Shown here: positions 8,691 through 60,859 of the stretch, piece after piece | Layout of the letters: the number at the start of each line of letters is the position of its first letter | Numbering within the stretch: position 1 is the stretch's first letter | NCBI RefSeq assembly: GCF_963921235.1 | Contig: NC_086105.1 | Coordinates: forward strand, 148,242,001-148,306,000 | Direction of reading: 5' to 3' | Length of the DNA: 64,000 bases | Source of the DNA: Mobula hypostoma | Taxonomy: Eukaryota | Notes under the pieces: model-generated | What the model saw: the letters and a program-made list of their open reading frames with translations, nothing else | Told to the model about the DNA's origin: nothing | Database searches by the model: none | Program-made: the position numbers and the translations under genes

Positions 8691-9058
8691 TAATATCTAT
8701 ATGCTAAAGCAAGGGAGTTGTGGACTGCAGGTGATTTTACTGAATTGCAGCCAGCAGAGTAGGTCAGATGGGTGTTCTGGTTCTGTTCTCTGGGGAGTGG
8801 ACACTTTGGGTAAGAGGAAGGTGTGGCAGCTGTGTCTCCCACAGTGGGAGATGGGATGGGGTGGTGTGTGAAATCTGTCCATCTGTCTCCCATTTGGATG
8901 CAGATTCTGGAGAGGGGAGGAATCAGTGAACTCAAAATGATAGAAGAGATGGTCTTCTACTGGGGAGGTTAACATGGGGTGGGGGGAACGGGGGAGGAAA
9001 GATCACACATGGTGAGAGCTGCCCTTACCACCATGTATCTGATTCACTTTCTTTCCAG

Positions 9059-9321
9059 CCACCAAGACACTGAACAGAGGAATTGCTGAGTTTATCGTGA
9101 TGGCGGCGGATGCCGAGCCCCTGGAGATTATCCTTCATTTACCCCTTCTCTGTGAGGACAAGAATGTGCCTTACGTTTTTGTAAGGTCCAAGCAGGCTCT
9201 GGGGCGAGCTTGCGGAGTGTGTCGGCCTGTCATTGCATCTTCGGTCACCATAAAGGAAGGCTCTCAGCTGAAGCCTCAGATTCAGTCTGTGCAACAGGCT
9301 GTGGAACGACTCCTGGTGTGA
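9059..9321 (+). CDS. SNU13: SNU13 coding exon 3 (15.5K/NHP2-like protein 1, L7Ae-family K-turn binding protein); spliced CDS 387 nt = 128 aa
   Basis: ctttccag|CC ACC AAG; [87 protein letters not shown]. Confidence 0.98.
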
Positions 9322-14446: not shown

Positions 14447-14588
14447 TCAATCCACAAAAATACTAGGCCACGTCTCTTTCTGGACCTGCACGGTGACACA
14501 ACTCAACCAGCTGCGACTCGCGAGCATCTCTCCAAAGATCTCCCATTTGTCATTTTCTTCATCGTACTGTTCAATGGTGTCGTGGTAC
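14447..14588 (-). CDS. Kelch-like protein last coding exon; spliced CDS 1746 nt = 581 aa
   Basis: ctcatttgcag|G YHDTIEQYDEENDKWEIFGEMLASRSWLSCVTVQVQKETWPSIFVD*; phases of all 8 exons are consistent. Confidence 0.93.
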
Positions 14589-15067
14589 CTGCAAATGAGA
14601 ACGGTTAACAGGGTGAAAGGAGAGCTCATCGGGCTGTGCAAATAAACCTCAATTAATTTATAAATGCAAGAGATTCTGCTGATGCTGAAAACCCACAGTA
14701 ACGCACACACAAAATGCTGGAGGAATTCAGCAAGTCAGACGGCATCCATGGAGAAAAATAAACGGTTTCGGGCAGAGATCGTTCATCAGGATTGAAGATC
14801 AAGACAGTTTATTCCTCTCCACAGATGCTGCCTGACCTGCTGAGTTCATCCGATGTTTTGTGTGTAGCTCTCAATTAAATTTTACCTTACCACAAACCTG
14901 AAGCTGAACATCTTTGGGCCGTGGGAGGAAACACAAACAGTCACGGGGCGGGGGAAAGGTACAAACTCCTTACCGACAGCAGGAGGAACCGAGCCCGGGT
15001 TACTGGTGTTGTAAAGCATTACATTAACCCCTACACTACCATGTCACTTGGGTTGTTTTCTCTAGAA

Positions 15068-15148
15068 CAGGGGTTCTCAACCTGGAACCCCCAAATCCCT
15101 CGGTTAATGGTAAGGGGTCCATGGCATAAAATTGGTTGGGGAGCCCTG
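15068..15148. mobile_element. ~80-bp hAT-type MITE; other copies at ~12718-12790 and ~30760-30847
   Basis: CAGGGGTTCTCAACC...GGTTGGGGAGCCCTG termini; shared core CCCTCGGTTAATGG. Confidence 0.75.
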
Positions 15149-15654
15149 GTCTCGAGTGTTAGAGGCTGAGAAACAATCTCAATCAGAATCAGGTTTATCG
15201 TCACAGGCACATGTTGTGAAATTTGCTGTTTGTGGTAACAATGCAAGACAAAAAAAATTACTACAAGTTACAATAAAAGTTAATAAATTGTGCAAAAGAG
15301 GAATAGTGAGGCAGTGTTCAGTGACCGTTTTCAAAAATCTGATGACAGAGAGGAAGAAGCTGTTCCTAAAATGTTGAGTGTGTGCCTTCAGACTCCTGTA
15401 CCTCCTCCCTGATGGTAACAATGAGAAGAGGGCATGTTCTGGGTGGTGAGGATATTTGAGGTATCACCTTCTGAAGATGTCCTCAGAGGAAACCCAATAG
15501 AGGTTTATAAAAGTAGGAGAGGCATAGACAGGGTTGTTTTCCTAGACAGCAAATTTCAAATACCACAGGGCAAAACTGAGAGGAGAAACTTCAAAGGTGA
15601 TTTAAAAGGTAAGGAGCACCTTGCACCTCTTTTGGTAGAAAGATATTTATAATG

Positions 15655-15985
15655 GAGATACTTCTCTACCAAAGGAGGTGCAAGGTGCTCCTTTGCTCCG
15701 CTAGCCTGCAGGTCACCCTTGGGCAGGGTGTAGCACCTGCTTATGTGAATCCATGGGAGCAGGTGGTGGATGGTCATATGAGCAGTTGCTGCAGATCACA
15801 AGTCCTGGTTATACAAACAGTGATGCCAGGCAAACAATCTCTGAAGAGTATTGATAGTGGCTGGGGTCACCCTGCCCAGAAGAAGGCAATGGCAAAGCAC
15901 TTCTGTAGAAAAATTTGCCAAGGACAGTCATGGATAAAGACCATGATTGCCGATGTCATACGACACAGCACATAATGATGATGTA
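15655..15985 (+). mobile_element. RTE-associated SINE-like element
   Basis: 3' AGAAGGCAATGGCAAAGCACTTCTG and (ATG)n tail; the 5' end recurs inverted at ~29565-29615. Confidence 0.6.
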
Positions 15986-16489
15986 TATAAACAGCATTTG
16001 GACCTGGATGGGGTTGCCAGGGCTGGAAGCAGATGTAAGAGGCATTGAGACAGATGTGTTTGGACTCTGGTCAGATGGGCTTAGCTTAAATAGGCATCCT
16101 TGTTGGCAGAGACATTGTGGGTTGAAGGCTCCTTTCTGTACTGGAGTGTTCTATCCTCTATGGATAGTGACACCCACCCCTGTGTTTTTCCGGGAGGTAC
16201 AATATTCTGTAATCATCCTTGGCTTTGAACCCAGCTGACAGAAGCAGGACGTACAATGAGCCACAGTAGCACAGCAGTTAGCACTTCGACGTGTTCTGGA
16301 GTTCGCAGTTCCATTCCAGTGTCGTCTATAAGAAGTTTGTATATTCTCCCATGAACGCGAGGGTTTTCCCCGAGAGCGCCAGTTTCTTCCTGCAGTCCAA
16401 AGACTTACTGGTTAGTAGGTTAATTGGTCATTATAAATTGTCCTGTGGTTAGGCTTGGGTTAATCAGACGGATTGCTCTGCGTCGTGGG

Positions 16490-17035
16490 TTGACCATGGA
16501 TGTTGAATCCTAGCTGTCCAGATACACAAACCAGGCCAGTACGCTGTTGCCTGTGTAGCAGACTCCCCCTCTCCACGCACCTGATGAACCCAAAGGAACG
16601 GCAGAGACCGATACAGTCTGACACCAATGGTGTCACAGGAGTTGCCAGTCAGCATTAAACTCAACTTAGGACTGTCTTAGGGACTCCAGCTACGGATTCC
16701 TCCCTCGGGGTTTACTCCCAAAGCCTTCCCCATGAGTGGGTATAGCCACAAGGAGTGGAGGCTTGAGATCAGAGTTTTCCTTCTCCAAGATGAGCTGCCA
16801 ACCACGGCTGACGAACCCCATCTGCCTGAAGTGACTGGCTTGTAGGCGCCTTTGGCCCTTCTCCTGTCAGTAGAGAGAAACAGTTCTGCTGGGCTTAGCA
16901 GCTAAGTCAGACGTGAAGGCCAGAAGCTGGATTTGGTTGTCAGAGGTTATTTGAGACGCAGACCATTGGGAGTATTTAATAGGTAGTGGGAGCTTTTCAC
17001 CACTACAGTCCCCAGCTATTAAAACCTTAAGGAAT
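16490..17035 (-). mobile_element. Interspersed repeat (RTE-related SINE/LINE); opposite-orientation copy at ~22125-22690, fragment at ~54070-54205
   Basis: Shared CAACCAAATCCAGCT..TGGCCTTCACG and GAGTT.AA.GCTGACTGGCAACTCCTGTGACAC in reverse complement. Confidence 0.75.
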
Positions 17036-17239
17036 CTATCTATATGTATCTGGCTATTAACTGTATCTACAGTTTAGCAGCAGTTATTGTAACACAGAGG
17101 TCTATCAGTGATGTGTGAACCCATGAATGGAAGAAATGAGCAGACTGTAGTGGCAGAGACTTCAATACATTCAGTAACTGTTGAGCAGACTGTAGTGATC
17201 ATCGAGAACTTCTGTACCATCTGCCAGAGCTGGAACTTC

Positions 17240-17660
17240 CCGGTGGTCAATTCCCATTCCCGTGGTCTCCTCATGCCACGATGAGGCTACCTTCAAACAG
17301 GGTGGAGAAGTACCACCTTATATTCTGTCTGAAGGCATGAATATCGATTTCTCCTCAGGTAAACATTCCCAGTCCCCACTCTGACCTTTCACTTCTTCTC
17401 ACCTGCCTACTACATCCGCCGGGTCCCCTCCTCTGTTCCTTTCTCCTGTGCTTCACTCCCCTCTCCTATCAGATTCCTCCTTCCCCAGCCCTTTACTTTT
17501 CCTACCTGCCTGACTTCACCTGTCACCTTCCCGCTGCCCACCTTTTTATTCTGGCATCTTCCCCCTTCTTTCTCGGTCCTGAAGAAAGGTCTCGGCACGA
17601 AACATTGACTGTCTATTCATTTCCATCGATGCTGCTGAGTTCCTCCAGAATTTTGTGTTG
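17240..17660 (+). mobile_element. Penelope-like element 3' fragment; short terminal pieces also at ~965-1075, 2450-2560, 14665-14870, 35425-35560, 49660-49920, 57380-57480, 61500-61620
   Basis: CCTGAAGAA.GGTCTCGG..CGAAAC..TGACTG...GATGCTGC...GAGTTCCTCCAG terminal motif. Confidence 0.7.
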
Positions 17661-17880
17661 TTACATAGCATGGAGTAGATGTTTTATGTTGTCAGGAACA
17701 GAACTTTATCACCTGGATTCTGTCTGTATGCATTGTTTAAGTCAGTCCCAAAGCCTCCAAGATTGATTTTTAAGGAAGGTTATGGGATGAAGACAGGAAA
17801 TGACAGATCAGACACCACGTTATATAATTCACATCACTTTGACTCATGAGTGGGTCCGTTCTTTACGTGGTGACACATAC

Positions 17881-18046
17881 CGATCCCAGCCCTCTTCTCC
17901 TCCCATCACGTAGATCTTGTCGCCAATCACAGCCACACCTGGCCGATACCGCCTCTCGTTCATTGGGGCGCACATCTTCCACATGTTGGTCTTGGGGTCG
18001 TACTGCTCCACCTTGTCAGTGTTCTCTGTCGAAGCGTGCCAGCCGC
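17881..18046 (-). CDS. Kelch-like protein coding exon 7 (Kelch 5 and start of 6)
   Basis: catcttccgcag|GGWHASTENTDKVEQYDPKTNMWKMCAPMNERRYRPGVAVIGDKIYVMGGEEGWDR|gtatgt; 166 nt. Confidence 0.95.
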
Positions 18047-20372
18047 CTGCGGAAGATGCACACCAGGTGAAAGATCCCTCACAAATCAGCACCCCCTTCC
18101 CAAAACGCTCGTTTCCCCATTAGTGATAGCAGAGGGCAGAGTCTCCTTTCATTACCTACTTGCTTAGGGTTACCACACAGAACAGGCTCTTCCAGCCCTT
18201 CGAGCCGCACTGCCCAGCATTCCACAAGTTAACCCTAGTATAATCACGGGACAACTTCAAATGACCAGTACGTCTTTGGAGTGTGGGAGGAAACCAGAGC
18301 ACCCAGAGAAAACCCACACATTCAACAGGGAGGACATACAGACCCTTTACAGGTGACATTGGAGTTGGGCTCTGAACCCAGATGCCCTGCTCTGTAACAG
18401 CATCACACTAACCCCCAAGGAGTGATTTGGCCCCTGATCTCAATGGAAAGAACTATTACTACTCTAGGGTTAAACCTAACAGATATCATCCTCCAAAAGA
18501 AGGATTCCAAAATCAAGGTTATTGTACAGTGGATACCTCACAGATTCAATGCTGGCCAGCACTGATGGTGTGATGTTCTCTGTGACTTCGACAGCTACTT
18601 CTCCTCTGCCATCAAAGGGTTAATGTATGAAATGTGTTTGATGGCTGTGGGCCTATCCTTGGAGTTTACAAGAATGAGAGGGGGATCTCATTGAAACCCA
18701 TCAAATATTGAAAGGCCTAGGTAGAGTGGACATGGAGAGGATGTTTCCTGCAGTGGGCAAGTCCTGAAGCAGAGGACGCAGCCTCAGAATAGAGGGACGT
18801 CCATTTGGAACGGAGATGAGGAGGAATTTCCCCAGCCAGAGGGAGGTGAGTCTGTGGAATTCTTTGCCATGGACGGCTGTGGAGAGCAAGCCACTGGGTA
18901 TATTTGAAGTGAAGGCTGAAGGTCCTTGATTAGTCAGGATGTCACAGGTTACGGGGAGAAGGCAGGAGAATGGGATTGGGAAGGATAATAAATCGGCCAT
19001 GGTGGAGTGGTGCAGCAGACTCGATGGGCCGAGTGGCCTGGCTCTGCTCCTGTGTCTATAGTATGGATGAGTTGGGCTGCAGGCTGAAGCCTCGCTTCCT
19101 TGCTATACGAGACCATGCCATAGACACAGGGGCAGAATTAGGCCATTCATCCCCTCCAGTCTGTGCTGCCATTCCATCGTGGCTGATTTATTAACCCTCT
19201 CAACCCCACTCTCCTGCCTTCTCCCCATAGCCTTACTGAACAAGTACGGGCACATTGCCAGTGTAATGGGAGAAATGCAGGTACCATTTCACCCACTCAA
19301 ACTGCGGGCACCCCACCTCTCCCCCTGCAGGGTCAGAACTGCCAGTGTTTCATTCACCTGCTCAAACCGTGTACAGTACCAGGATTCGCATCTAATCTAG
19401 CCCCATTTCTCTGCATTGGTCCATCTCTCTCCAAACCGCTCCTATCCACGTACCCGTCCAAATGTCTTTAAAGAACTTGAATTGGACCTGCTTCTACAAG
19501 AGGACAAAATTTTAAGATGATTGGACGAAGGTATGGGGGGGGGTGGAGAAGTAGAGGAAGGCTTTCCATACGGGGTGGTGGGAGCATGGAATAAGGCATT
19601 TGGGGTGTACATGGATGGGAGGGGATCAGCGGGACGCGGGTTGAGCGCGGGTAATCCGGGGGCCATGGGCAATCGGAGGATGCTGTGGTCAGTTGGGCTG
19701 CAGGACCCATTTCTGTGCTGTTTCATGACGACTCCTTCCAGCACGGCAGCGTAGCAGTCCACGTAACGCCAGCACAGGGCCAGCTGCAAGATTAGAGTTC
19801 CAGTCCCGTACGGAGCTTGTCTGCCTCCAAGAGGACCCCGGCCTTGTCGTAGGGTTTGGAGGTTTATGTCCCTCAATAACCCAGAGAGCCATGTTGGCTG
19901 AGGTCAGGGCTTTATGGTTTGGCCCTTGGTAGTGTTACCCATGCCAAACAGGTCAAAGGGTCGAGGTTTGGGGGTTCAACTCAGGGATAGTAACCCTGAC
20001 TGTGATGGAAATAGCAATGAAGAATCCTACATCAGAGCGCGGCCGCATTCCTGAGTTTCCACCCGGGACTCGCCTGACCAACAGTGGTGAAAACTGAGAG
20101 GAAGCTACTGACACGATGAAGGAAGCCCTGAACACCGCCCGAGGGAAGAGGTTTGTATGTCTCCCCGTGAGTGCATGGATTTCCTCCGGCTGCCCCAGTT
20201 TCCTCCCACATTCCAATAGTTTAAACATCCAGGTCAGTGAGTTGTGGGCACGCTCTAATGGTACCAAAAGCATGGTGACCCTTGTCCTCAGCGCATCCTC
20301 ACTGATTTCCACACTTGCTCTGTATGTTTCAATGTACATGTGACAAATAAAGCTAATCTTATCATTCCTTAC

Positions 20373-20519
20373 CAATGACATAGATCTTCCCCTTGAGAAC
20401 ACAGGCAGCAGAACCAGAGCGAGGAATCTGCATTGGAGCCACCTCAGTCCAGGTGTTGGTCTTTGGGTTGTAAACCTGAACCAAATTCATTCCATCTCCG
20501 TCTTCCAGCACCGCTCCTC
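20373..20519 (-). CDS. Kelch-like protein coding exon 6 (Kelch 4)
   Basis: ctgactgtgcag|GGAVLEDGDGMNLVQVYNPKTNTWTEVAPMQIPRSGSAACVLKGKIYVI|gtaagg; 147 nt. Confidence 0.94.
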
Positions 20520-21222
20520 CTGCACAGTCAGAACCCGTCAGTGTTCCATTCACCCAAACCACGGGCACCCACCTCTCCATCCTCCCGCACAGTCAGAACC
20601 CGTCAGTGTTCCATTCACCCAAACCACAGGCACCCACCTCTCCATCCTCCCGCACAGTCAGAACCCGTCAGTGTTCCATTCACCCAAACCACAGGCACCC
20701 ACCTCTCCATCCTCCCGCACAGTCAGAACCCGTCAGTGTTCCATTCACCCAAACCACGGGCACCCACCTCTCCATCCTCCCGCACAGTCAGAACCCGCCA
20801 GTGTTCCATTCACCCAAACCACGGGCACCCACCTCTCCATCCTCCCGCACAGTCAGAACCCGTCAGTGTTCCATTCACCCAAACCACAGGCACCCACCTC
20901 TCCATCCTCCCGCACAGTCAGAACCCGCCAGTGTTCCATTCACCCAAACCACGGGCACCCACCTCTCCATCCTCCTGCACAGTCAGAACCCGCCAGTGTT
21001 CCATTCACCCAAACCACGGGCACCCACCTCTCCATCCTCCTGCACAGTCAGAACCCGTCAGTGTTCCATTCACCCAAACCACGGGCACTCACCTCTCCAT
21101 CCTCCCGCACAGTCAGAACCCGCCAGTGTTCCATTCACCCAAACCACGGGCACCCACCTCTCCATCCTCCCGCACAGTCAGAACCCGCCAGTGTTCCATT
21201 CACCCAAACCACAGGCACCCAC
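20516..21222. repeat. 65-bp tandem repeat (~10.9 copies) overlapping the acceptor of Kelch coding exon 6
   Basis: Unit CCTCC(C/T)GCACAGTCAGAACCCG(T/C)CAGTGTTCCATTCACCCAAACCAC(G/A)GGCACCCACCTCTCCAT with exact 65-nt period. Confidence 0.98.
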
Positions 21223-24200
21223 TACTTCCCCTACAGTTAGAACTTGCCATTGTTCCAGTTAGAGAGACCATCTCCCTCCCTCTCCCACAAATCCAGGAGT
21301 TCAAACACACCTTTGTGCTTTTAACTCCAGAATATAGACCCAGACAAGGACGTGTGGGCTGTCTGAAGTTGCAGATGTCGCGGGCAAACGGGAACAGCTT
21401 GGAAAGGAATCAACCGCTCCGCGAGTGAAAATCGTTGTTTTGCCGGTCTCCAGTGCACAACATTCTGTTACAACAATGCATGAACTCATAATCCTTCCTA
21501 ACCAGAATTAAATCACCTGGGCAACTCACTCGCTTCTAGTCCCCCCTGGACATTCCATTCTCACCTGCAGTGCCAGGTGGCTGTTTGCACGTGACATCAG
21601 CCGCACCCCGGTGCCCCACTTCGACAGACAAGCTAAAGCAAGCGAGGGAGGCCAGAGGGTCTCATACCCGGTGAGATAGGGACGGGCCTGTCCTAGCACG
21701 TGATCCAGCGCTGCGGTAGGAACACTTCGTGGAGAGCGAAGGGCACGAGGCACAGAGGTCAGTCATCCAGCGTAACCCCAGTTGTCACGACTACTCGCAC
21801 CACTGGACTTCCGAGGCTGACAAAATGGAACTGCCCCAGGGCAACGGCTTTTCCACCTTCAAAACTCCTGCACAGTTCACATTTCAGAGGAATAGAGCAA
21901 CCTAACCTTCAGTCACTAAACTTCCTGACCAGCAGACCGTAATTCGCAAAGACAGGCACAATTATCCTCAACACGGGTGCTCCACAAGGCTGTGTCCTCG
22001 GTCCCTGGACACAACACCGTACAGCCAAATCCTGCTCCAATTCCAGCCACAAGCTTACAGGTGACACCACTATGGTGGTCTGGATCTGAATTACAATGAG
22101 CCACTGCAGGATTGTTTCTTCAGGTTGTTATAGCCGGCAGTGGGGGGTGGTAATGGGGACAAGCTCCCACGACCTATTAAATGCTCCCAATGGCATGCAC
22201 CTCAGATAGCCTCTGACAACCAAATCCAGCTCCTGGCCTTCACGTGTGCCTTGGCTACCAAGCCCGGCGGAACCGTTTCTACTGACAGGAGAAGGGGCAA
22301 AGGTGGGTTACTGGCACCGTAAGTCAGTCACTTTGGGCCAATATGGGTCGTCAGCTGTGGTTGGCAGCTCATCTACAAGAAGGAAATCTCTGATCTCAAA
22401 CCTCTGCTGCCTTGCGGCTGTACCCAATCAGGGGGAAGGCTTCAGGAGTAAACTCTTAAGGGAAGAATCCAGAGATACACTCCCCATGGCAGTCCTACAT
22501 TGAGTTCAACGCTGACTGGCAACTCCTGTGACACTGCCTGTATCAGTGTCCGCCGTTCCTTTGGATTCATCAGCGGCATGGAGAGGGGAGCCTGCTACAT
22601 GGAGCAACAGCTTGCTCCCCACATGTCCTGACCTACCCATGACAGCCTGGATGCACCATCCACGGTCGACCCTGACCAGCAGAGGGCCTCTCGAGATAGA
22701 GACTTAGCAACGTGGTGTCAGGATCACACCTTCCCCTCAGCGTCAGCAAAACACGGCCAAGAAAGATCAACAGCACCGACTTCCTCGGGAGGTTAAAGAA
22801 ATTCAGCACATCCCCGTTGACCCTCACCAAATTTTAATCCACCTACCACGGAAAGTACCCCATCCAGATGCATTACAGCTTGACACGGCAACTGCTTTGC
22901 CCGGGACCTCGAGAAACTGCAGAGAGTTGTGGACAGAGCTCGGCACATCACAGAAACCAGCCTCCCCTTCACGGACTCTGTCTACACTCCTCACTGCTTC
23001 AGTAAAGCAGCCAGTAGAATCAAAGACCCCACCCACCCCGGCCATTCTCTCTTCTCCCCCTCCCATCGGGCAGAGAATACACGCCTGAAAGCTCGTCCCA
23101 CCAGGCTCAAAGCACAGCTTCCATCCCACAAACTCTTGGATGGACGTCTTGTCGATAAGGTGGACTCTTGACCCCTCAACCTGCCTCATTTTGACCTTGC
23201 ACCTGATTGTCTACCTGCACTTCCTCTGCAGCTTAATTCCACATTGTTACTGTTTTCCTTGTTCTACCTCAGTGCACTGTGTAATGATCTCATTGGTGTC
23301 AGCACTGTGCAAGATTTTCCACTGTATCTCAGTGCATCTGACAATACCAACATCCTGTCATGTATTGTGGCACACGGGATGCTCCTACACTCCCCTGTAG
23401 CAGTACCAGACTAAGATGGGTGGAGTCTTTCTCCTAGGGTGGAAAGGTCAAATTCCAGAGGGCAGAGGTTTAAGGTGAAAGGGGGAGGTTTGAGGAGAAT
23501 GGGGGAAGTTTAAGGAAGATGTGTGGGGTAAGTTTTATTTCAGAAGAGGTTTGGGTGCCTGGAACACACTGCCGAAGAGTTATAGAATCACACAAAACAG
23601 GCCCTTCGGCCCACAATGTTGTGCCAACCTTTGAACCCATTCTTAGATCAGTCTAACCCTTCCCTCCTACATAGCCCTCCATTATTCTAATATCCAAATG
23701 CCCAGGAGTCTATTACATGTCCCTAACATATTGGCCTCTACCACCCCACCACCCCTGGCAGAGCATTCCACCCATCCACCTCTCCCTCTCAAAAAAAAAA
23801 TCTACTTCTGACATTGCATGTTTTCTTCCAAACACACTAAAGTTATGCCTGCTCCCATATTGGCCATTTCCACCCTGTGAAAAGTCTCTGGCTGTCCATT
23901 CAGTCTGTGCTTCTTATCTTGTATACCTCAATCAAGTCACCTCTCATCCTTCTCTCCAAAGAGAAAAGCCCCAACTCACTCAACCCATCCTCCTAAGACA
24001 TGCTGTCTCATCCAGGCAGCATCTTGGTAAATCTCCTCCGCACCCTCTCTAAAGCTTCCACATTCTTCCTATGATGAGGCGATCAGAACTGAACACAATA
24101 CTGCAAGTGTGTTCTAACCAGGGTTTTACAGAGATACAATATTACCTCGCACCTCGTCAACTCAATCCCCTGACTGATGAGGACCAACAGACCACACACC

Positions 24201-24269
24201 TTGCAGCAGCCTTTCACAAGGCAGTTACCTCAAGCAGCAAGTCGGCTGGGACTCGAACACCATCCTTAC

Positions 24270-24446
24270 CTGCTACGTACAAGAGACCTTTGAGTGCTAC
24301 AACAGCAGGGCTGGTCACTGCAATCTTCATGGGGGCCAGGAAACGCCAGGAGTTGGTGCGTGGGTTGTAGCACTCGATGGAGTCCAGCCTGGAAGTTCCT
24401 TCCCATCCACCTACTGCAAACACGTAGCCGTCCAGCATGGCCAGGC
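24270..24446 (-). CDS. Kelch-like protein coding exon 5 (Kelch 3)
   Basis: ccctctctcag|GLAMLDGYVFAVGGWEGTSRLDSIECYNPRTNSWRFLAPMKIAVTSPAVVALKGLLYVA|gtaagg; 177 nt. Confidence 0.95.
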
Positions 24447-24537
24447 CTGAGAGAGGGAAGGTGCCAACATCAGCACTCCAGACACGAGGTTCTGCAGGTG
24501 CCAGAAATCCAGAGCAACAGCCCACACAAAGGGGCAG

Positions 24538-24735
24538 CAAGGTGGTGTAGTGTAGTGGTTAGCACAATCTGTACAGTACCAGTGACCCAGGTTCAATTCC
24601 CACCGCTGTCTGTAAGGAGTTTGTTTGTTCTCCCCGTGACTACACGGGTGTCCCGGTTTCCTCCCACAGTCCAAACACGGACCTGTTGGTAGGTTAATTG
24701 GTCATTCTAAATGGTCTCGTGATTAGGCTGGGGTT
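24538..24735 (+). mobile_element. tRNA-derived (V-type) SINE; other copies at ~6060-6295, 6790-7070, 14915-15040, 16262-16470, 18175-18410, 20145-20360, 28890-29070, 37125-37330, 49070-49220, 55550-55650
   Basis: A box TAGTGTAGTGG, B box GGTTCAATTCC, core TTCTCCCCGTGAC...GGTTTCCTCCCACAGTCCAAA. Confidence 0.85.
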
Positions 24736-24859
24736 GAGTCGGGGGAGGAGGGGTTGTCGGGGGGAGGCTGGGGTTAAGTCAGGGGGAGGCTTAGGAAGGG
24801 GGCAGAAGGCAGATTACGATGGTGGGGTGAGGGGGAAGGAGAACAAGCTGGCAGGTCAG

Positions 24860-25544
24860 ACCAGGTCAGGGTGGGGTGAAGTAAGAAGCTGCGAGGTGAT
24901 TGGTGGAAGAGCTGAAGGAGGAGGAATCTGATTGGTGTGAGAAAGGAAAGGAGGCGGCACCAGAGGGAGGTGATGGGGGGTGGGTCGGGGGTGAGGTGGG
25001 GGGAGAACCAGAATGGGGAAGGGAAAAAGAGAGAAGGGGGAGGAAGAGAAAATAATCAGGATAGCGTAATCGATGCTCATGCCATCAGATTGGAAGCTAC
25101 CTGGAGAAAATATAGGACGTTTTTCCAACTTGAGTTTGGCCTCATCATGACAGTAGATGATTGAGAATGGAAAGTCAAATTGAAACAGGTGACCACCAGG
25201 AGATTCACGCTTTTGTGGCAGACAGAGCAAAGGTTCTCTATGAAGCAGTTCCCTGATTATGTTGCGTCTCACTTATGTAGAGGAGGCCAAACCAGGAGCA
25301 ACAGATACAGCAGGTGACCCCAAAAGACTCAGGGGTGAGGCATTGTCTGCTTGAGGCTGTGAATGGAGGTGAAGGAGGTGGTGAGCAGGCAGGTATAGCA
25401 CTTGCACTACTTGCAGGGATAAGTGTCAGGATGGAGATTAGTGCGGAGAGTTGACTGGATAAGGGAACCACGGAGAGAGCAAACCATACAGAAAGCAAGG
25501 ATGGAAAAAGATCCGTACTCTTCAAAGCCCTCAATCCTCCAGAG
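24860..25544 (-). mobile_element. Penelope-like retroelement fragment (decayed GIY-YIG endonuclease)
   Basis: ESFGVTCCICCSWFGLLYISETQH resembles the V.YCI.CS.CGLLYIGET GIY-YIG motif; followed by a pyrimidine-rich tail. Confidence 0.75.
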
Positions 25545-27372
25545 AGTCTCCCTTCTCCCATCCCATCGGACAGAATACCCACACGGACAGTCTCTCCTCT
25601 CCCCCGTCCCATCGGACAGAATACCCACACGGACAGTCTCTCCTCTCCCACGCCATCGGACAGAATACCCACATGGACAGTCTCTCCTCTCCCCCGTCCC
25701 ATCGGACAGAATACCCACACGGACAGTCTCTCTTCTCCCACGCCATCGGACAGAATACCCACATGGACAGTCTCTCCCACAGACAGTCTCTCCTCTCCCA
25801 CGCCATCGGACAGAATACCCACACGGACAGTCTCTCCTCTCCCCCGTTCCATTGGACAGAATACCCACACGGACAGTCTCTCCTCTCCCCCGTTCCATCG
25901 GACAGAATACCCACACGGACAGTCTCTCCTCTCCCCCATCCCATTGGGCAGAATACCCACACGGACAGTCTCTCCTCTCCCCCGTTCCATTGGACAGAAT
26001 ACCCACAGACCGTCTCTCCTCTCCCACGCCATCAGACAGAATACCCACACAGACCGTCTCTCCTCCCCCGTCCTATCAGACAGAATACCCACACGGACAG
26101 TCTCTCCTCTCCCCCGTCCCATCGGACAGAATACCCACACGGACAGTCTCTCTCCTCCCACGCCATCGGACAGAATACCCACATGGACAGTCTCTCCCAC
26201 AGACAGTCTCTCCTCTCCCACGCATCGGACAGAATACCCACATGGACAGTCTCTCCCACAGACAGTCTCTCCTCTCCCCCGTCCCATCGGACAGAATACC
26301 CACACGGACAGTCTCTCCTCTCCCCCATTCCATTGGACAGAATACCCACACGGACAGTCTCTCCTCCCCCGTCCCACCGGACAGAATACCCACCCGGACA
26401 GTCTCTCCTCCCCCGTCCCACCAGACAGAATACCCACCCGGACAGTCTCTCCTCTCCCCCGTCCCATCGGACAGAATACCCACAAGGACAGTCTCTCTTC
26501 TCCCATGCCATCGGACAGAATACCCACACGGACAGTCTCTCCACTCCGCCGTCCCATCGGACAGAATACCCACACGGACAGTCTCTCTTCTCCTATGCCA
26601 TCGGACAGAATACCTACACGGACAGTCTCTCCACTCCCGTCCCATCGGACAGAATACCCACACGGACAGTCTCTCCTCTCCCGTCCCATCGGTCAGAATA
26701 CCCACACGGACAATCTCTCCTCTCCCCCGTCCCATCGGACAGAATACCCACACGGACAGTCTCTCCTCTCTCCCGTCCCACCGGACAGAATACCCACCCG
26801 GACAGTCTCTCCTCTCCCCCGTCCCATCGGACAGAATACCCACACGGACAGTCTCTCCTCTCCCCCGTCCCATCGGACAGAATACCCACACGGACAGTCT
26901 CTCTTCTCCCCCGTCCCATCGGACAGAATACCCACACGGACAGTCTCTCCTCTCCCCCGTCCCATCGGACAGAATACCCACACGGACAGTCTCTCCTCTC
27001 CCCCGTCCCATCAGGCAGAATACCCACACGGACAGTCTCTCCTCTCTCCCGTCCCATCGGACAGAATACCCACACGGACAGTCTCTCCTCTCTCCCGTCC
27101 CATCGGACAGAATACCCACACGGATAGTCTCTGCTCTCCCATCCCTTCGGACAGAATACCCACACGGATAGTCTCTCCTCTCCCGTCCCTTCGGACAGAA
27201 TACCCACATGGTCGGTCTCTCCTCCCCCGTCCTACCAGACAGAATACCCACACGGACAGTCTCTCCTCCCCTGTCCCATCAGACAGAATACCCACATGGA
27301 CAGTCTCTCCTCCCGTCCCATTGGACAGAATACCCACACGGACAGTCTCTCTCCTCTCCCCCCATCCCATCA
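25545..27372. repeat. ~44-47-bp VNTR/minisatellite (~39 copies) in a Kelch-gene intron
   Basis: Unit CCCATCGGACAGAATACCCACACGGACAGTCTCTCCTCTCCCCCGT with length variants. Confidence 0.98.
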
Positions 27373-27390
27373 GGCCACTGTGCCCATTAC

Positions 27391-27519
27391 CTAGTTCAGA
27401 ACGAGCCTCGTTCATTGGGAACATCTCATGCCACATGTTATAGCAGGGGTCATAACGCCACATGTCCTTGCTGGGAGACCCATCGGGATACTCCCCTCCG
27501 GCCACATACAGCGTGTTAC
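27391..27519 (-). CDS. Kelch-like protein coding exon 4 (Kelch 2)
   Basis: ctctgcacag|GNTLYVAGGEYPDGSPSKDMWRYDPCYNMWHEMFPMNEARSEL|gtaatg; 129 nt. Confidence 0.94.
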
Positions 27520-28068
27520 CTGTGCAGAGTGAGAAAATGGCTACTGTTACTGTCCGAGTACCTGGTCACCTGCCTAAGGGAGAGATACAGAGACCACTTA
27601 CAAGGATGTTGCCCAGACTTGGGGAACGGAGTTTAGAGAAAGGTTGAATAGCTTAGGACTTTAGACCCTGGAGAATGAGAGATGATTTGAGAGAGGTATT
27701 CAAATTTATGAGGGGTCTAGATAGGGTAAATGGTGTTTTTCAGAGGTTGGGTGAGACCAGAGGTCATGGGATAAGGGTGAAAGGTGAAATGTTTAAGGGG
27801 AACCTGTTCACTCAGAGGGTGGTGAGAATGTGGAACGAGCTGCCAGCAGAAGTGGGTTTGATTCCAACATCTCAGAAAAGTTTGTAGAAGTTGGCCGAAG
27901 GCCAGTTTCCACACTCTGGTGGGGGGGGGGGGGGGGGGAGAGTGGTTGGAGATGAGAGACTGATGGGAGAGGGTATGGACCCATGGACCCAGTTGGTCAA
28001 ACAGATTCTTTAGCGGTACATCGCGAAGTGGCTACTAAATGAAAAGTGGTTCTTCGTCCTCAGCCTAC

Positions 28069-28215
28069 CTGATGCAACCAGCCCGTGTTTACTGATGGCA
28101 AAGGGCAAACAAGACAGACACTTCCATTCACGGCCAATGGGATCGAAGGATTCCACACACCGCAGAACCACCTTGTCATCTTCCCCGCCAGCCACAACGA
28201 TCACTTCGTTTATCC
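28069..28215 (-). CDS. Kelch-like protein coding exon 3 (Kelch 1)
   Basis: ctttgcag|GINEVIVVAGGEDDKVVLRCVESFDPIGREWKCLSCLPFAISKHGLVAS|gtaggc; 147 nt, phase 1/1. Confidence 0.94.
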
Positions 28216-29902
28216 CTGCAAAGCACAGAACACCAGCTCCAATGAAGGTTCACGCCGCCATAGCAGATGTGGACCTCCTGGGGGTCCCTTAACTATTTCA
28301 GCTAATACCCGGCCGGTGTACGGCCAATGGGCGCTACAGAAATTCAGTCACTGTTGCCACATTGGAAATGCAACAGCTAATTTAAAATTAGATCAGTTAA
28401 AGCTGCCAGCAGAATCAAAAACCCCACACACCCCAGACTTTCTCTCTTCTCCCATCTTCCATCGGGCAGAAAATACAAAAGCCTGAAAGCACGTAGCACC
28501 AGGCTCAAAGACAGCCTCTACTCCACTGTTATCAGACTATCAGTGGCCTCCTGGTACAATAAAATGGATTCTTCACCTCACAGTCTACCTAGTTATGATC
28601 TTGCATCTTATTGTTTCCCCGCGCTGCCCTTTCTTTGTCGTTGTTACACTTTATTCTGCATTGTTATTGTTTTACCTTGTCCTACCTCAAGGCTCTGTGT
28701 AATGGTCTGATCTGTATGAACAGTATGCATCAGAAGTTTTTCACTCTATCTCCATACATGTGACAATAATTAACCAATGCCAAAAGACCAGCAGGCCATG
28801 AAGTTCTTTGCTTGTGTGGAGCGTAGTACGCACGATAAAAAGAAATATGACAATGACAATATTGTTGGGTATTGTGACATCATTACAGCTCAGGGCGGAG
28901 TTCAGAGTTCAGAGTTCAAATCCACTGCCTCTGGAAGGAGTCTGTACGTTCTCCCTGTGACCACGTCGGTTTCCTCCAGGTGCCCCGGTTTCCTCCCACA
29001 GTCCAAAAACGTACCGATTAGTAGGTAATTGGTCATTGAAAATCATCGTGTGATTAGGCTAGGATTAAATCAGGGCGTTTGCTGCTCAGTGTGACTTGAA
29101 GTGCAGAACAGATTGTAGTGTTGTCTCAGATAGTGCCTCTACTTCCCTAGAAGTTTGCGAAGATTTGGCATGTCATCTGAAATTTTGACAAACTACTACA
29201 GATGTGTGGTGGAGAGTATACTGACTGGCTGCATCACAGCCTGCTATGGAAACACCAATGACCTTGACAGAAATTCTTACAAAAAGTAGTGGACACAGCC
29301 CAGACCATCATGGGTACAGCCCTCCTCAGCACTGAGCCTATCTACACAGAGAACTGTCGCAGGAAAGCAGCATCCATCATTAAGGACCCCCATCACCAGG
29401 ACGTGCCCTCTTCTCATTGCTACCATCAGGGAGGAGGTTCAGGAGCCTGAAGGCACACACTCAGCGATTCAGTAACAGCTTCTTCCCCTCCACCACACGA
29501 TTTCTGAATGGGCATTGAACCCATGAATACTACCTCACTATTTTTTTTTCCAATTTTTGGGTAGCAGAGGGAAGGAAAGCCTTGCATCTCCTTTGGTAGA
29601 GACGCATCTCCACCTCACCATCGGAATGTAGAGTATATTTTATGTATGACACTGTACCGCTGCAGCAAATCAAATTCACAAGATACTGTATGTCAGTGGT
29701 TCTGAAGGTCTCATTGCCCATCAAAACTGGGTTCAAGTGCAACAGCCTCTGACCAGATTACACAGTCTTAGGGAAAGGCATTTCACACATTTCAGAGGGT
29801 CTCGCCTGACATCCTACAGGCTGGAGAAGGAGCTATACAAATGCACATTCTAGGGATGGGCTGCGGGGGAGCGGTTTGGGGCACAGACACTCCAGCGTTC
29901 AC

Positions 29903-30089
29903 CTGTTGACCTCCGCGGCCTGGTCCGGGGGCCAAAGATCTCGCCTCGTCGGTCTTGTAACAACAGGTAGTCCTTGGCCTCTGCGATCAGTCGCTGGCAC
30001 GGGAGAGAGTCGTGGATAACGCTCTGCGGTTCGATGACATCATGGATGTAGTACGGACTGATCAAGGGCAGGCGGACATGCTCCAGGAT
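29903..30089 (-). CDS. Kelch-like protein coding exon 2 (BACK end and linker)
   Basis: ttcctcctcag|ILEHVRLPLISPYYIHDVIE...EAKDYLLLQDRRGEIFGPRTRPRRSTG|gtgaac; 187 nt. Confidence 0.94.
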
Positions 30090-30928
30090 CTGAGGAGGAA
30101 TTATGCACAGTTTATGCTAATTTGTATTAATTTACACCTCATTACCATGTCATGACTGTGCTGCTGTTGCCAAAAGCCAATTTTCAGTGCCTTTATACCA
30201 TATACATGTAGGGCCTTCAAGACGATAAACTTGAACTTGAGGCTGTCTGTTCCTCCTCCCCCTTTAGATGCTCTTTCCCACACTACCAAAGTCACAGCAC
30301 CCTCCCCATCTATCCATTACCAGCCACAAGACCATTAAACAATCAGGCCACTCAGCCCAAGTCTGCTCCAATATTCCGAGGCAGATTTACTATCCCTCTC
30401 AACCCCATTCTCCTGCCTTCTCTCCATAACCTTTGACACTCTGACTAACCAAGAACCTATCAACCTCTGCTTTAAATATACCCAATGATTTGGCCTCTCA
30501 GCCGTCTGTGGCAATGAATTCCAGAGATTCACCTCCCTCTGGCTAAAGAGATTCATCATCTCCATTCTAAAAACCCTTCTATTCTGAGGCTGTGCCCACC
30601 GGTCAGAGACAATCCCACTACAGGAAGCATCCTCTCCCCACCACTGGCTAGACCTTTTGATATTCTGTGGTCTCAGCCCAAAATGTTAATGGCTCATTTC
30701 TCTGCACAGACACTGCCTGGCCCCCTGAATTCCTGTACATAGACAGGAAAGGCCTAGACCAGGTGCTCCCAACCTGGGGTCCACAGACCACCAGGTTAAT
30801 GGCAGGGATCCAGGGCATATATAAAAAAATAAATCGGGAACCCTTGGCTTAGTGGGACAAGCTGGGTCAGCCAGGACCTATCAGGCCAAAAGCCTCCAAA
30901 TACAGCAGGAACACCCTCCCCCACTCAC

Positions 30929-31579
30929 CTTCTCAAAGACCAGTTTCCTCGATTGGTCCCTCTCCAGCCAGAGGAGCACGGCGTCAAAGACCATCTCCTC
31001 CCGGGAGACGTTCAGGTCGTCGTTGGAGATGATCTGGGCCAGCTTCTCGGCAGAGAGAGCGAGAAACTCCTCCTGTGTGCGGACGGCGCAGAAGTGGTGA
31101 AGGATGTAGGCCAGGCTCTTGGCCTGCAGCTCATCGCAGGAGTGGGCCTCAGCGAAGCAGTGGATGCCCACACAGTTGGTCTCGTCCATCTGCCGCTCCA
31201 GGAACTGGCAGCAGGCCTCCCTCACCGGGCCGATGTCCAGGAGGTTAGCGGCAGCCAGAAGGCCCTGGACATTAGCCCCGGAGATGTGCAGCCGGCCAGA
31301 GTAGCAGTAGCCCAGCAGCAGACCGATCATCTGTGGCTCCAGCCCGTTGACCGCCACACGTTCCTGCCGCGACTCCTGAAACCCCACCGAGAACATGGCC
31401 CGGAAGTAGGAACTGGAGGAAGCCAATACGATGCGGTGACAGGGGAACTCCTGTCCCCCACAGCACAGTGTCACATCACAAAACGCCTGCTTCTGCCACA
31501 GGCTGTGCAGACCCTCCAACACTCTGCCCGAATGACCTGGCTCCTGGAAGTCACAACCCTCGACCTCCGCGTGGTCCAT
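30929..31579 (-). CDS. Kelch-like protein, first coding exon (BTB and most of BACK); exon acceptor at 31616
   Basis: MDHAEVEG...FCDVTLCCGGQEFPCHRIVLASSSSYFRAMFS...NCVGIHCFAEAHSC...LNVSREEMVFDAVLLWLE...FEK|gtgagt; acceptor ctctctggttctag at 31618-31617. Confidence 0.95.
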
Positions 31580-42984: not shown

Positions 42985-43320
42985 GGCACAGTCGTGTAGT
43001 GGTTAGCACAACAATTACCAGTACAGGTGGCATGGCATGGTAGTGCAGTGATTAGCACAATGATTTACAGTAATCTGCATGGTAGTGTAGTGATTAGCAC
43101 AATGATTTACAGTAATCTGTATGGTAGTGTAATGATTAGCACAATGATTTACAGTACAGTCAGTATGGTAGTGTAGTGGTTAGCACAATGATTTATAGTA
43201 CAGGCAGCTTGGGTTCAATTCCAGTCAATGTCGCTTGGGTTTTCTCTGGGTGGTCCGGTTTCCTCCCACAGTCCAAAGGTGTACAGGTTTGTAGGTTCAT
43301 TGGCCATTGTAAATTGTTAG
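42985..43320 (+). mobile_element. tRNA-derived SINE with five tandem head units
   Basis: ~42-bp ATGGTAGTGTAGTGATTAGCACAATGATTTACAGTA unit repeated before one B box GGTTCAATTCC. Confidence 0.85.
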
Positions 43321-51359: not shown

Positions 51360-52990
51360 CACCCCTCCCCGCCGTCCGTCTCCCCCCCCCCGCCGTCTCC
51401 CTCCCCCTCCCCTCCCCCTCCCTCCCCCTCTCCTCCCCTCCCCCTCCCTCCGTCTCCCCCCCGCCGTCTCCCTCCCTCCCCTCTCCTCCCCTCCCCCTCC
51501 CTCCATCTCCCCCCGCCGTCTCCCTCTCCTCCCCTCCCCCTCCCTCCGTCTCCCCCCCGCCGTCTCCCTCTCCTCCCCTCCCCCTTCCTCCCCCTCCCTC
51601 TCCCTCTCCTCCCCTCCCCCTCCCTCCGTCTCCCCCCCCGCCGTCTCCCTCTCCTCCCCTCCTCCTCCCTCCGTCTGCCTCTCTTCCCCTCCCCCTCCCC
51701 GCCGTCCGTCTCCCCCCCGCCGTCTCCCTCTCCTCCCCTCCCCCTCCCTCCGTCTCCACCCCCCCGCCGTCTCCCTCTCCTCCCCTCCCCCTCCCTCCTC
51801 CTCTCCTCCCCTCCCCCTCCCTCCGTCTCCCCCCCCGCCGTCTCCCTCTCCTCCCCTCCTCCTCCCTCCGTCTGCCTCTCTTCCCCTCCCCCTCCCACCG
51901 TCCGTCTCCCCCCCGCTGTCTCCCTCTCCTCCCCTCCCCGCTGTCCGTCTCCCCCCCACCGTCTCCCTCTCCTCCCCTCCTCCTCCTTCCGTCTGCCTCC
52001 CCTCCCACCGTCTGCCTCTCTTCCCCTCCCCCTCCCACCATCTATCCCCCTCCCACCATCCGTCTCCCCCCCGCCGTCTCCCTCTCCTCCCCTCCCCCTC
52101 CCTCCGTCTGTCTCCCCTCCCACCGTCTGCCTCTCTTCCCCTCCCCCTCCCACCATCTATCCCCCCCGCCGTCTCCCTCTCCTTCCCTCCTCCTCCCTCC
52201 GTCTGCCTCTCTTCCCCTCCCCCTCCCACCATCTATCCCCCTCCCACTGTCTGATTCCCCCCCCCGCCGTCTCCCTCTCCTCCCCCCTCCTCCTGCCGGC
52301 TATCTCCCTCCCACCGTCTGTCTCCCCTCCTGCCGTCTGCCTCCCCCTCCCTCCGTCTGTCTCCCCTCCCACCATCTGCCTCTCCTCCCTTCCCCTTCCC
52401 GCTGTCTATCCCCCTCCCACCATCCGTCTCCCCCCCGCCGTCTCCCTCTCCTCCCCCCCCTCCTGCCGGCTATCTCCCTCCCACCGTCCGTCTCCCCTCC
52501 TGCTGTCTGCCTCCCCCTCCCTCTGTCTGTCTCCCCCTCCCTCCATCTGTCTCCCCTCCCACCATTTGTCTCTCCTCCCTTCCCCTTCCCGCTGTCTATC
52601 CCCCTCCCACCGTCCGTCTCCCCTCCCGCTGTCTGCCTCCCCTCCCCTTCCCCCTCCCGCTGTCCCCCTCCCACCGTCTGTCTTCCCTCCCCCTCCCGCT
52701 GTCTCCCTCTCCTTCCCTGCCCCTCCCGCTGTCTGCCTCTCCTCCCCTCCCCTCCCACCGTCTATCCCTCTCCCAACCGTCCATCTCCCCCCCGCCATCT
52801 CCCTCTCGTCCCCCGCCATCTGCCTCTCCTCCCGTTCTCCCTCCCACTGGCCCCCCTCCTATCCCCCTCCCGCCATCTGCCTCTCCTCCCCTCCCGCTGT
52901 CAGCCTCTCCACCCCTCCCCCTCCCACCATCTGTCCCCGTCCCCTCCCCCTCCTGCCATTCCCCTCTCCCCCCAACCGTCTGCCTCCCCA
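51360..52990. repeat. C/T-rich degenerate tandem array in CRYM intron 1
   Basis: Units such as CCCCCCGCCGTCTCCCTCTCCTCCCCTCCCCCTCCCTCCGTCT; very few A on +. Confidence 0.97.
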
Positions 52991-53714: not shown

Positions 53715-54060
53715 TTCTGCTTGTATCTGTTACTTCTGACTGTTGTGTGTTCACTTGTATCCATCAAGTTTGACTGTGTGTTCACTTGTATCCATCATGT
53801 CCCACTGTTATGTCTTCATTTGTATCCATTGACTGTTATGTGTTCACTTGTATCCATTATGTCTGACTGTTGTGCATCCTCTCTCCTGTATTCATTACAC
53901 CTGACTGTCGTGTGTTCACTTGTATCCATCATGTCCCACTGTTGTGTGTTCATTTGTATCCATCATGTCTGACTTGTGCATCATCTCTCCTGTATTCATT
54001 ACGCCTGACTTGTGTGTTCTGTTCCTTGTATCTGCCACATTATATGACTGTTGTGTCAGA
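53715..54060. repeat. Degenerate TG-rich tandem repeat in CRYM intron 2
   Basis: Recurring GACTGTTGTGTGTTCACTTGTATCCATCATGTC. Confidence 0.8.
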
Positions 54061-58565: not shown

Positions 58566-58855
58566 GTATGTTTATCTTACGTGCACATGCCTCTCCCCCG
58601 CCTCCCCCTGCCTCGGAGTTTGCACAGGGAATGCCTTATGGTTCTGTAGTCTATGGGCCGAAGGGCCTGTTTGTGCTATGTTCTGTGTGAGACCCTAGGA
58701 CATAGGAGCAGAATTAGGCCATTCAGCCCATTGATTCTGCTCTGCAATGTAAGCCACTTCTGCATTCCATTCTCCCCACCTGTTTACCGCCCCGGCCCCT
58801 GCACCCATTCTCCATCGGAGATGTGGAACTGACTGCCGCCGTTGGAATCCCGCAG

Positions 58856-59039
58856 GTGAAGGTGTGGAGCCGAACCCGCGAGCGGGCAGAGAGATTTGCA
58901 CAGAGGGCAGCAGGTCCCGTGCAAGTGTGCGGATCTGCTCAGGAGGCTGTCAGCGGCGCAGACGTGGTGATCACGGTGACCATGGCCACTGAGCCAGTGC
59001 TGTTCGGGGAGTGGGTCAAACCCGGAGCCCACATCAACG
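58856..59039 (+). CDS. CRYM: CRYM exon 5
   Basis: cccgcag|VKVWSRTRERAERF...GADVVITVTMATEPVLFGEWVKPGAHIN G|gtagga; 184 nt. Confidence 0.97.
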
Positions 59040-60859
59040 GTAGGAAGCAGCCGGAGGCTCCCACAGCCCGGAAAAAACACTCAGGCTCAGTCCGGAGTTT
59101 GAATTGGGAATGTACAGAAAGTTCAGGGGAGTTTTTAAAAAGTTTAACCCTAGCTCTTTGCATTATAACCTGTCACTGTCCTAGAACAGATCCTGCACAA
59201 TCAGGAAAGATCACCAATGCCTTTATTTTCTGAAGAGAGCTGAACTTTACATATCTATACTCACATCATTCTATAGATTTACAGTAGGGAGCATCCCAAC
59301 AAGCTGCATCACTGCATAGTACAGAAACTGCTCTGCGACAGACAGGAAGGCTCGACAATGGGTAGTCAAAACTGCCCAACGCATCTCCAGCACCACCCTA
59401 ACCACCTTCAAGGACATGTATACAGAAAGGTGCCGGAAAAGACCAGCAATATCACGGAGGATCTCACCCACCTTAATCATAGGCTGTTTGTCCCACTCCC
59501 ATCAGGGAGGAGACATGTACCACCCACATCAGGACCCCCAGACTCAAAAACTAACTTTCCCCAAGCAGTAAGGCTGATCAACACCTCCACACACCCCCAA
59601 CCACCACTACTTTATCATTTCCTGTCAGTCACCTTATGGACATACAATCAATCTATGTATATAAGCTATTTTACATATTTATATCTAATGTGTTTTTTAT
59701 CATTGTGTTCTTTATCTTATTGTGTTTTTAGTGCAGCATCAGATCCGGAGTAACAATTATGTTGTTCTCCTTTACACTTGTGTACAGGAAATGACATTGA
59801 ACAATCTTGAATCTTATTGTACAAGAGAACTGTTTAATAGTCTTATACCAGCAGGACAATTGAACAGTTTCTTTGTACAATAAGATGGCTACTGACCTCG
59901 CAATCTGCCTCATTATGATCCAGCGCTTTACTGTCTGCCTGCACGGCACGTTCTCTGTAATTAACACTTTATTCTGCATTGTTAGTGTTCTCCCTTGTTC
60001 TGGTGGGGAGTTGCCGAGATCCCGAGAGCGATGTTGTCGGGAGTTTGGCGGTTTGGCAATTAGCTCCAGGTGGGGTCACCCATGGCGGTGGAGGTCAAGG
60101 GGGAGGCTCCAGACAAAGAGCAGTCCAACCAAGATGTCGGTGGTGGAGCTGGCGGAAGATGATGCCACATCACAACGGCAGTGAAGATGGGGGGAGGCTG
60201 CAGCAGTGACCAATCCCCGGTCGTCTAACATTCCAGACCACTGGACCCTGACCCCAATCTGTCAAGGACCGTGTGGTGGCTGCCCATGCATCAGCCACCC
60301 CACGTTAAACTAAATCACGCCCAGGCACTCTCGTTTAAGGGAATAATCACTTAAAAGAACATCATATTCAACTTGAGTCACCACACTAGTTCTACTTCAA
60401 TTATAACCTGTAAGGATGGCATTCAAAACAGTATTTCACTCTACATGCAACAACATTAAACCAATTTATGAATGTATTATTGGCATCTGTCATCCAGGAC
60501 ATGTCCTTTTCTCATCACTACCATCACAGAGGGGATCCAGGAGCCTGAAGACACACACTCAACATTTCAGGAATAGCTCCTTCCCCTCTGCTATCAGATT
60601 TCTGGATAGACAATGAACCCAGGAACGCTGCCTCATTTTTTCGCTTTCCCATTGCACTGCTTATTTAATTTATTTCTTATTGTAATTTATATATTTTTAA
60701 TATATATTGTAATATACTGCTGCCACAAAACAACAAATTTCATGCGACGTGCTGGTGATATTAAATCTGATTCTGATCATGTGTAGTGAAGTACAGTGAA
60801 AAATTGCATGTCATGCTCTGCACGAAAACTTCCAGGAGTAGTTGTAGCAATAGTTAGTG

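Follow-up and report, generated by a model that had tools for sequence, protein, structure and literature searches.

A tandem array of 65-bp units spanning the exon 6 acceptor of a BTB-BACK-Kelch gene in the ray Mobula hypostoma

Tandem arrays whose terminal monomer lies across an exon-intron boundary have been described on the donor side of the human F7, IFI6/6-16, CBS, LMNB2 and PDGF genes, among them the arrays of F7 IVS7 (37 bp), IFI6/6-16 intron 2 and CBS IVS13 (PMC1557585). The authentic first site is used in such human arrays, as reported for F7, LMNB2 and PDGF, sometimes together with the next one or two copies (PMC1557585). The 'mirage' repeats of intron-exon boundaries found in amphioxus, with units of 10-160 bp that show concerted evolution, also leave regular splicing undisturbed; those of BflGb6 repeat the 3' end of an intron together with the start of an exon, and many of their units, though not all, keep AG/GT (PMC3087553). 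At the ABCA7 locus, the length of a 25-bp VNTR in intron 18 was measured to correlate with skipping of the next exon, and an isoform retaining one unit was seen (PMC5954066).

Here we describe an array of 65-bp units at the boundary between intron 5 and exon 6 of a gene on the minus strand of a 64,000-nucleotide stretch of Mobula hypostoma DNA, hereafter the window. The array is an acceptor-side vertebrate form of the boundary-spanning class: its units are arranged head to tail and fall within roughly 10-160 bp, its terminal monomer lies across the boundary, and the exon-proximal site is the one spliced at the level of assembled contigs. No acceptor-side minisatellite of a vertebrate was found in the literature searched, the amphioxus case being the nearest. 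Like the amphioxus mirages, of which BflGb6 is likewise on the acceptor side, the ray array spans a boundary, contains units whose splice signal is no longer intact and coexists with normal splicing; the mirage units, however, include a sizeable piece of exon, whereas the ray unit copies only 5 exonic nucleotides. Length polymorphism has been shown in amphioxus. The ray array sits in a vertebrate, and most of its copies have specifically lost the AG. With the human donor-side arrays it shares a terminal monomer across the junction that repeats the splice site in the intron, and a donor-like site in its units reads G/GTGGGT, as does the F7 donor. The human arrays, in contrast, repeat 5' splice sites downstream of the exon and their pseudo-sites are often identical to the real one, whereas the ray array repeats a 3' splice site upstream of the exon and 8 of its 10 pseudo-sites are mutated at the AG. 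Finally, the ABCA7 VNTR resembles the ray array in carrying a splice signal in each unit, in lying between two exons and in the occurrence of downstream-exon skipping, but its unit begins with a donor and the ray unit carries an acceptor.

The host gene and its surroundings

The eight GT-AG exons of the gene (Table 1) encode a protein identical to M. hypostoma XP_062915486.1 (isoform X1, 581 aa). Exon 1 aligns with the BTB-BACK regions of KLHL3, KBTBD2, gigaxonin and KEAP1 (E-values down to 3e-45), the C-terminal part aligns with the Kelch domains of KEAP1 and KLHL20 (E ~1e-62), and the precomputed Pfam matches are PF00651, PF07707 and PF01344. On this domain order, a BTB and a BACK domain followed by six Kelch repeats, the product is predicted to be a KLHL (BTB-BACK-Kelch) CUL3 substrate adaptor. 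The gene family, located by a profile-free search and then by a word-indexed search, carries the NCBI automatic names KLHL20, KLHL24, KLHL3 or diablo, is identified in UniProt as the orthologue of zebrafish si:ch211-256e16.3, and ranges from molluscs and amphioxus to fishes, amphibians and cartilaginous fishes. The cluster that it forms at 90% identity contains isoforms of Hypanus sabinus, Hemitrygon akajei, Mobula birostris and M. hypostoma. The start codon of M. birostris and the stingrays (MDLTAVDSMDH...) is ATA in M. hypostoma (31603-31601, minus strand; ..D I D L T A V D S M D H..), so that the M. hypostoma protein begins 8 residues later, which fits the annotated 581-aa form.

Table 1. 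Positions, in window coordinates, of the coding exons and of the splice-site copies in the array.
Feature	Position	Strand	Basis or remark
BTB-BACK-Kelch gene, coding span	14447-31579	minus	eight exons, exact translation
Exon 1	31579-30929	minus	exact-translation exon model
Exon 2	30089-29903	minus	exact-translation exon model
Exon 3	28215-28069	minus	exact-translation exon model
Exon 4	27519-27391	minus	exact-translation exon model
Exon 5, Kelch blade 3, 177 nt	24446-24270	minus	donor CAG/GTAAGG
Exon 6, Kelch blade 4, 147 nt, phase 1-1	20519-20373	minus	donor TTG/GTAAGG
Exon 7	18046-17881	minus	exact-translation exon model
Exon 8	14588-14447	minus	exact-translation exon model
GG pseudo-acceptors (first base)	21171, 21106, 20911, 20846, 20781, 20716, 20651, 20586	minus	units read in register
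Nearest pseudo-acceptor, unit 10, GG	20585-20586	minus	65 nt upstream of the real acceptor
AG pseudo-acceptor, unit 3	21040-21041	minus	same as the real site from -48 to +5; CTGAC branch-point A (-19) kept
AG pseudo-acceptor, unit 4	20975-20976	minus	branch-point A at -19 changed to G (CTGGC)
Authentic acceptor AG of exon 6, terminal unit 11	20520-20521	minus	exact-translation exon model; spliced joint in three RNA runs
Hypothetical in-frame 12-nt segment, GAGGATGGAGAG	21028-21039	minus	GTGGGT directly after; sequence and translation
Second hypothetical 12-nt segment, also GAGGATGGAGAG	20963-20974	minus	GTGGGT directly after; sequence and translation

The window is rich in minisatellites. A second one within the gene, in intron 4 (25545-27362, minus strand), is larger than the array at exon 6; it extends over 1.8 kb in about 35-40 copies of a unit of ~46 bp and starts ~28 nt downstream of the exon 4 donor (GT at 27390-27389). 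The possibility that this unit is a copy of that donor was rejected, the 45 nt compared scoring 15 against the unit, with an average of 13 and a maximum of 24 among shuffles. Exon 4, which adjoins the 46-bp array, is exactly the exon missing from isoform X2 of M. birostris. Smaller arrays lie at 43035-43200 (42 bp) and 53735-54032 (34 and ~105 bp). A tandem region of low complexity, 1.5 kb long and rich in C/T (in G/A on the minus strand), occupies 51365-52895; its nested periods range from 10 to 197 bp. On the plus strand, two open stretches, whose translations were judged by eye, resemble an exon of SNU13/NHP2L1 (~9043-9318) and a mu-crystallin/ketimine-reductase-like exon (~58718-59230). 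A search for structured RNA in the introns between 17500 and 28500 gave no Rfam match at gathering score.

Architecture of the array

Tandem Repeats Finder delimits the array at 20515-21222 on the minus strand, with a period of 65, 10.9 copies, 97% matches, no indels and a score of 1325, and its final partial unit reaches 5 nt (GAGGA) into coding exon 6. On the minus strand the 21-nt acceptor motif GGTTCTGACTGTGCRGGAGGA is found 11 times, where chance would predict 0.01 occurrences, and the 32-nt inner part of the unit is likewise present 11 times in the array and nowhere else in the 64-kb window. Read in register, the units end in ...CACTG(A/G)CGGGTTCTGACTGTGC(A/G)G, followed by GAGGATGGAGAG and then by GTGGGT, and the acceptor dinucleotide is GG in eight copies and AG in two pseudo-copies and the real site. 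The array of 65-bp units copying the exon 6 acceptor, with eight GG and two AG copies (20976-20975 and 21041-21040), each AG being followed by an in-frame 12-nt segment closed by a donor-like GT, is thus as described in the original prediction, which had also put the likeness of the copy at 21041 to the real site at ~47 intronic nt; the identity runs over 48.

Only four positions vary among the full units (2-11), whereas the first 12 nt of the 5'-most unit are degenerate. At position -49 a single unit differs, and position -43, at a CpG, is either C or T. The other two, numbered so that the A/G of the acceptor dinucleotide is column -1, are that column itself and column -18, where the branch-point-like A of the first CTGAC alternates with G. 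All four combinations of the states at columns -18 and -1 are present among the units, pointing to recurrent mutation or to exchange within the array. Unit 3 differs from the real terminal unit at 1 of 65 positions (-49), its final 48 intronic nucleotides being identical; as the identity covers -48 to +5, any 3' splice-site score must be equal for the two.

In DNA run X22, which probably derives from the assembled sample, k-mer depth reaches 149.4 at 20579 and 14.8 in single-copy intron, indicating ~10 copies, in line with the assembly, where the 12-nt segment stands in 10 copies. Neighbouring dispersed repeats, unlike the array unit, reach DNA depths of 10^4-10^5. A transposon-derived or dispersed origin of the unit was rejected on its confinement to the array within the window and on its DNA depth of ~10x single copy.

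Splicing across the array

To follow splicing over the region 20200-24600, we used RNA runs X4 and X26 of M. hypostoma, RNA run X5 of a ~98% identical relative, probably M. birostris, and DNA run X22. The RNA records are assembled contigs, which lose rare variants, with a sensitivity of roughly a tenth or more of transcripts. A joint at 20518/24269, equivalent to splicing from 24270 to 20519, skips a 3750-nt segment that, on the minus strand, has GT..AG ends; the joint is present in X4, X26 and X5 and absent from the DNA run, and in X26 a single 3558-nt mRNA contig carries it at a depth of 61.7. None of the contig joints listed for the three RNA runs lies at 21039, 20974, 21028 or 20963. These results demonstrate, at contig level, that the authentic exon-proximal acceptor is spliced and that the other copies are silent or nearly so. 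The original prediction had named a deep RNA record containing only the 24270 to 20519 junction as evidence against itself; this junction is indeed the only one between exons 5 and 6 among the contig joints listed, and at contig level the result stops short of a full refutation.

In X4, a contig that runs unspliced over the intron 5/exon 6 boundary (20494-20551) has a depth of 3.6, about a third of the 11.4 reached by the spliced joint. The last array unit has a depth of 3.9 in that run, and the unique intron at 21229-21522 a depth of 0. This boundary contig could be pre-mRNA under patchy sampling or read-through from an upstream AG. The deepest run, X26, has no boundary contig, and its single-copy intron pieces occur at depths of 3-5, as in ordinary pre-mRNA. 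The RNA of the relative (X5) contains a 95-nt piece of a unit that carries GG and departs at one position from the M. hypostoma sequence (20579 A>G on the plus strand, giving GAGGACGGAGAG), and therefore the array, or at least a duplicated unit, predates the split between the two species. All 10 M. hypostoma units carry GATGG at this place, against GACGG in the one contig of the relative, M. birostris, a difference in keeping with the way repeats evolve.

Origin of the copies and competing readings

Most probably the array does no harm and belongs to a repeat type of which amphioxus and human genes already provide examples. Specifically, we assign a probability of about 0.68 to its being a locally born, boundary-spanning minisatellite on the acceptor side that behaves as neutral or nearly neutral intron DNA. 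Its origin would lie in the head-to-tail duplication of a 65-nt piece, in which the final 60 nt of intron 5 are joined to the 5 nt that open exon 6, and in the later amplification of this piece to about 11 copies. The duplication probably arose through slippage or unequal exchange involving two GAGGA motifs, one where the exon begins and one 65 nt upstream of it. The exon 6 boundary is ancient, the same limits recurring where isoforms of rays, teleosts, a caecilian and a lungfish skip the exon, and because the array holds 5 exonic nucleotides, the repeat copied the splice site and not the reverse.

The silence of the copies is what would be expected from exon definition, from the AG dependence of 3' splice sites and from the skipping of very short exons. 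The acceptor of exon 6 has the poorest pyrimidine tract in the gene (8/17, versus 11-14/17), and a 3' splice site with so weak a tract should depend on its AG; the eight GG pseudo-acceptors would be silenced by the loss of that AG. Lying 455 and 520 nt upstream, the AG copies of units 4 and 3 are probably too far away for exon-definition pairing with the exon 6 donor, and a 12-nt exon would be too small for definition unless special enhancers were present. The GG state reads GCGG, so that one CpG-to-CpA transition restores GCAG, and such a transition is a plausible source of the two AG copies. The copies closest to exon 6 are GG, and there an active AG would create a frameshifted exon of favourable size, 212 nt; this exon-proximal bias fits purifying selection, in a tiny sample of ten units.

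An alternative, which we hold to be unlikely, is that the array modulates the inclusion of exon 6, either through G-runs acting as intronic enhancers or through decoy branch-point and pyrimidine sites placed upstream of a weak acceptor, in which case copy number would shift the balance between the full-length protein and an exon-6-skipped form missing one propeller blade. The array is indeed rich in G, with 46% on its sense strand and 40 runs of at least three G (5.7 per 100 nt, versus 1.7 in the rest of the intron); the acceptor tract it adjoins is the weakest of the gene, the exon 6 donor reads TTG/GT, an isoform skipping exon 6 (X2, 532 aa) is annotated in M. hypostoma, and the ABCA7 VNTR offers a precedent for intronic repeat length correlating with skipping of the next exon (PMC5954066). 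The Kelch exons, however, are all symmetric (phase 1-1), so every skip is in frame and visible. The loss of exon 6, and with it of Kelch blade 4, is also annotated in H. akajei (X2), Perca flavescens, Etheostoma spectabile, Rhinatrema bivittatum and Protopterus annectens, and thus need not depend on the array; its occurrence in these five other species, across four vertebrate classes, weakens the case for skipping as an array effect. The recurrent in-frame skip may represent either a five-bladed isoform that has been conserved or noise of the kind common at weak exons.

It is distinctly unlikely that the two AG copies act as low-level cryptic acceptors in which the donor of the 12-nt segment is ignored, sending transcripts to nonsense-mediated decay and imposing a small, allele-dependent drain on expression. 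The consequences of such use are as originally predicted: 455 or 520 nt would be added with a frameshift, and the computed translation from either AG (...GGWRGGCPWFG, then stop) ends after 10 codons. The identity of unit 3 to the real acceptor from -48 to +5 agrees with cryptic use, as do the boundary contig and last array unit recovered from X4 next to unique intron at zero depth. Against it, joints from 24270 to 21039 or 20974 are absent among those listed, X26 shows the pattern of ordinary pre-mRNA with no boundary contig, and the resulting exons, of 602-667 nt, exceed by a wide margin the lengths suited to exon definition.

The original prediction favoured another reading, in which one or both AG copies delimit a real 12-nt microexon that places WRGG after the GG doublet of Kelch blade 4, with array length and A/G state tuning the isoform ratio; inclusion might be limited to some tissues. 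Its translation was correct, in that inclusion of one segment would give ...VAGGWRGGAVLEDG...; inclusion of both would insert WRGGWRGG. The loop after the Kelch GG doublet lies on the substrate-binding face of KLHL propellers, as seen in KEAP1/KLHL structures. The site GAG/GTGGGT fits 7 of 9 donor consensus positions, within the range of the gene's real donors, and UGC, a feature of neuronal microexons, directly precedes the AG. The same GTGGGT opens the intron at the authentic F7 donor, UGG/gugggu (PMC1557585). In addition, the predicted isoform X3 of Mastacembelus armatus has a 3-aa MKR insert at exactly the exon 5/6 junction (LLYVTG-MKR-GAVLEDG), from an alternative splice site or a 9-nt microexon in the homologous intron, so small inserts at this junction are at least predicted elsewhere.

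Evidence from RNA and from proteins nevertheless makes a functional 12-nt microexon very improbable. The corresponding junctions are absent among the listed joints of the three RNA runs, and the WRGG insert is found in 0 of 9 annotated isoforms of four ray species, exon-skipping forms included. Neither GGWRGG nor GGRRGG occurs in any of 430 retrieved homologous proteins, and a search of short protein fragments across the exon 5/6 junction returned only exon-level, teleost-like fragments containing neither string. Among 213 homologues aligned over the junction, the sequence ...Y(V/A)xGGA(V/I)LEDGDG is shared, with hardly an exception, by the ~130 orthologues that align ungapped, leaving the loop GGAVLEDGDG nearly invariant. 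The peptide itself differs within the genus, the single M. birostris unit seen reading GAGGACGGAGAG, with RR instead of WR; unit 4 has lost its branch-point A; and 12-nt exons are normally skipped unless dedicated enhancers are present. Regulated vertebrate microexons are 3-27 nt long and SRRM4-dependent. The ray segment resembles them, hypothetically, in its AG/GT flanks, in-frame length within that range, UGC before the AG and placement in a surface loop, but they are conserved in sequence across species and supported by inclusion junctions in RNA, and neither holds for the ray segment. The microexon and the tuning role put forward in the original prediction thus lack support at contig and protein level. 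Should the two AG copies be live in some tissue after all, for example in neurons under a UGC-dependent programme, which we likewise consider highly improbable, they would insert WRGG or WRGGWRGG into the blade 4 loop. The outcome would be a new protein isoform, variable between alleles and produced by a minisatellite that is young and mutable, and further copies would in time become armed as CpG decay turned GCGG into GCAG.

Tandem arrays are error-prone in assembly and the sole DNA run is probably the assembled sample itself, but it is hardly credible that collapse or expansion of a repeat produced a false copy number or the two AG states, given a k-mer depth that agrees with a 12-nt segment in 10 copies, the lack of alternative letters in contigs that cover the AG copies, and the presence of the unit in RNA runs of two species.

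Nothing in the array suggests a changed KLHL protein. The array constitutes a clean, natural vertebrate counterpart, on the acceptor side, of the well-studied donor-side boundary minisatellites. With eleven near-identical 3' splice sites, among which both the AG and the branch-point A vary naturally between A and G, it provides a substrate for asking how exon distance and the AG decide the choice of a 3' splice site.
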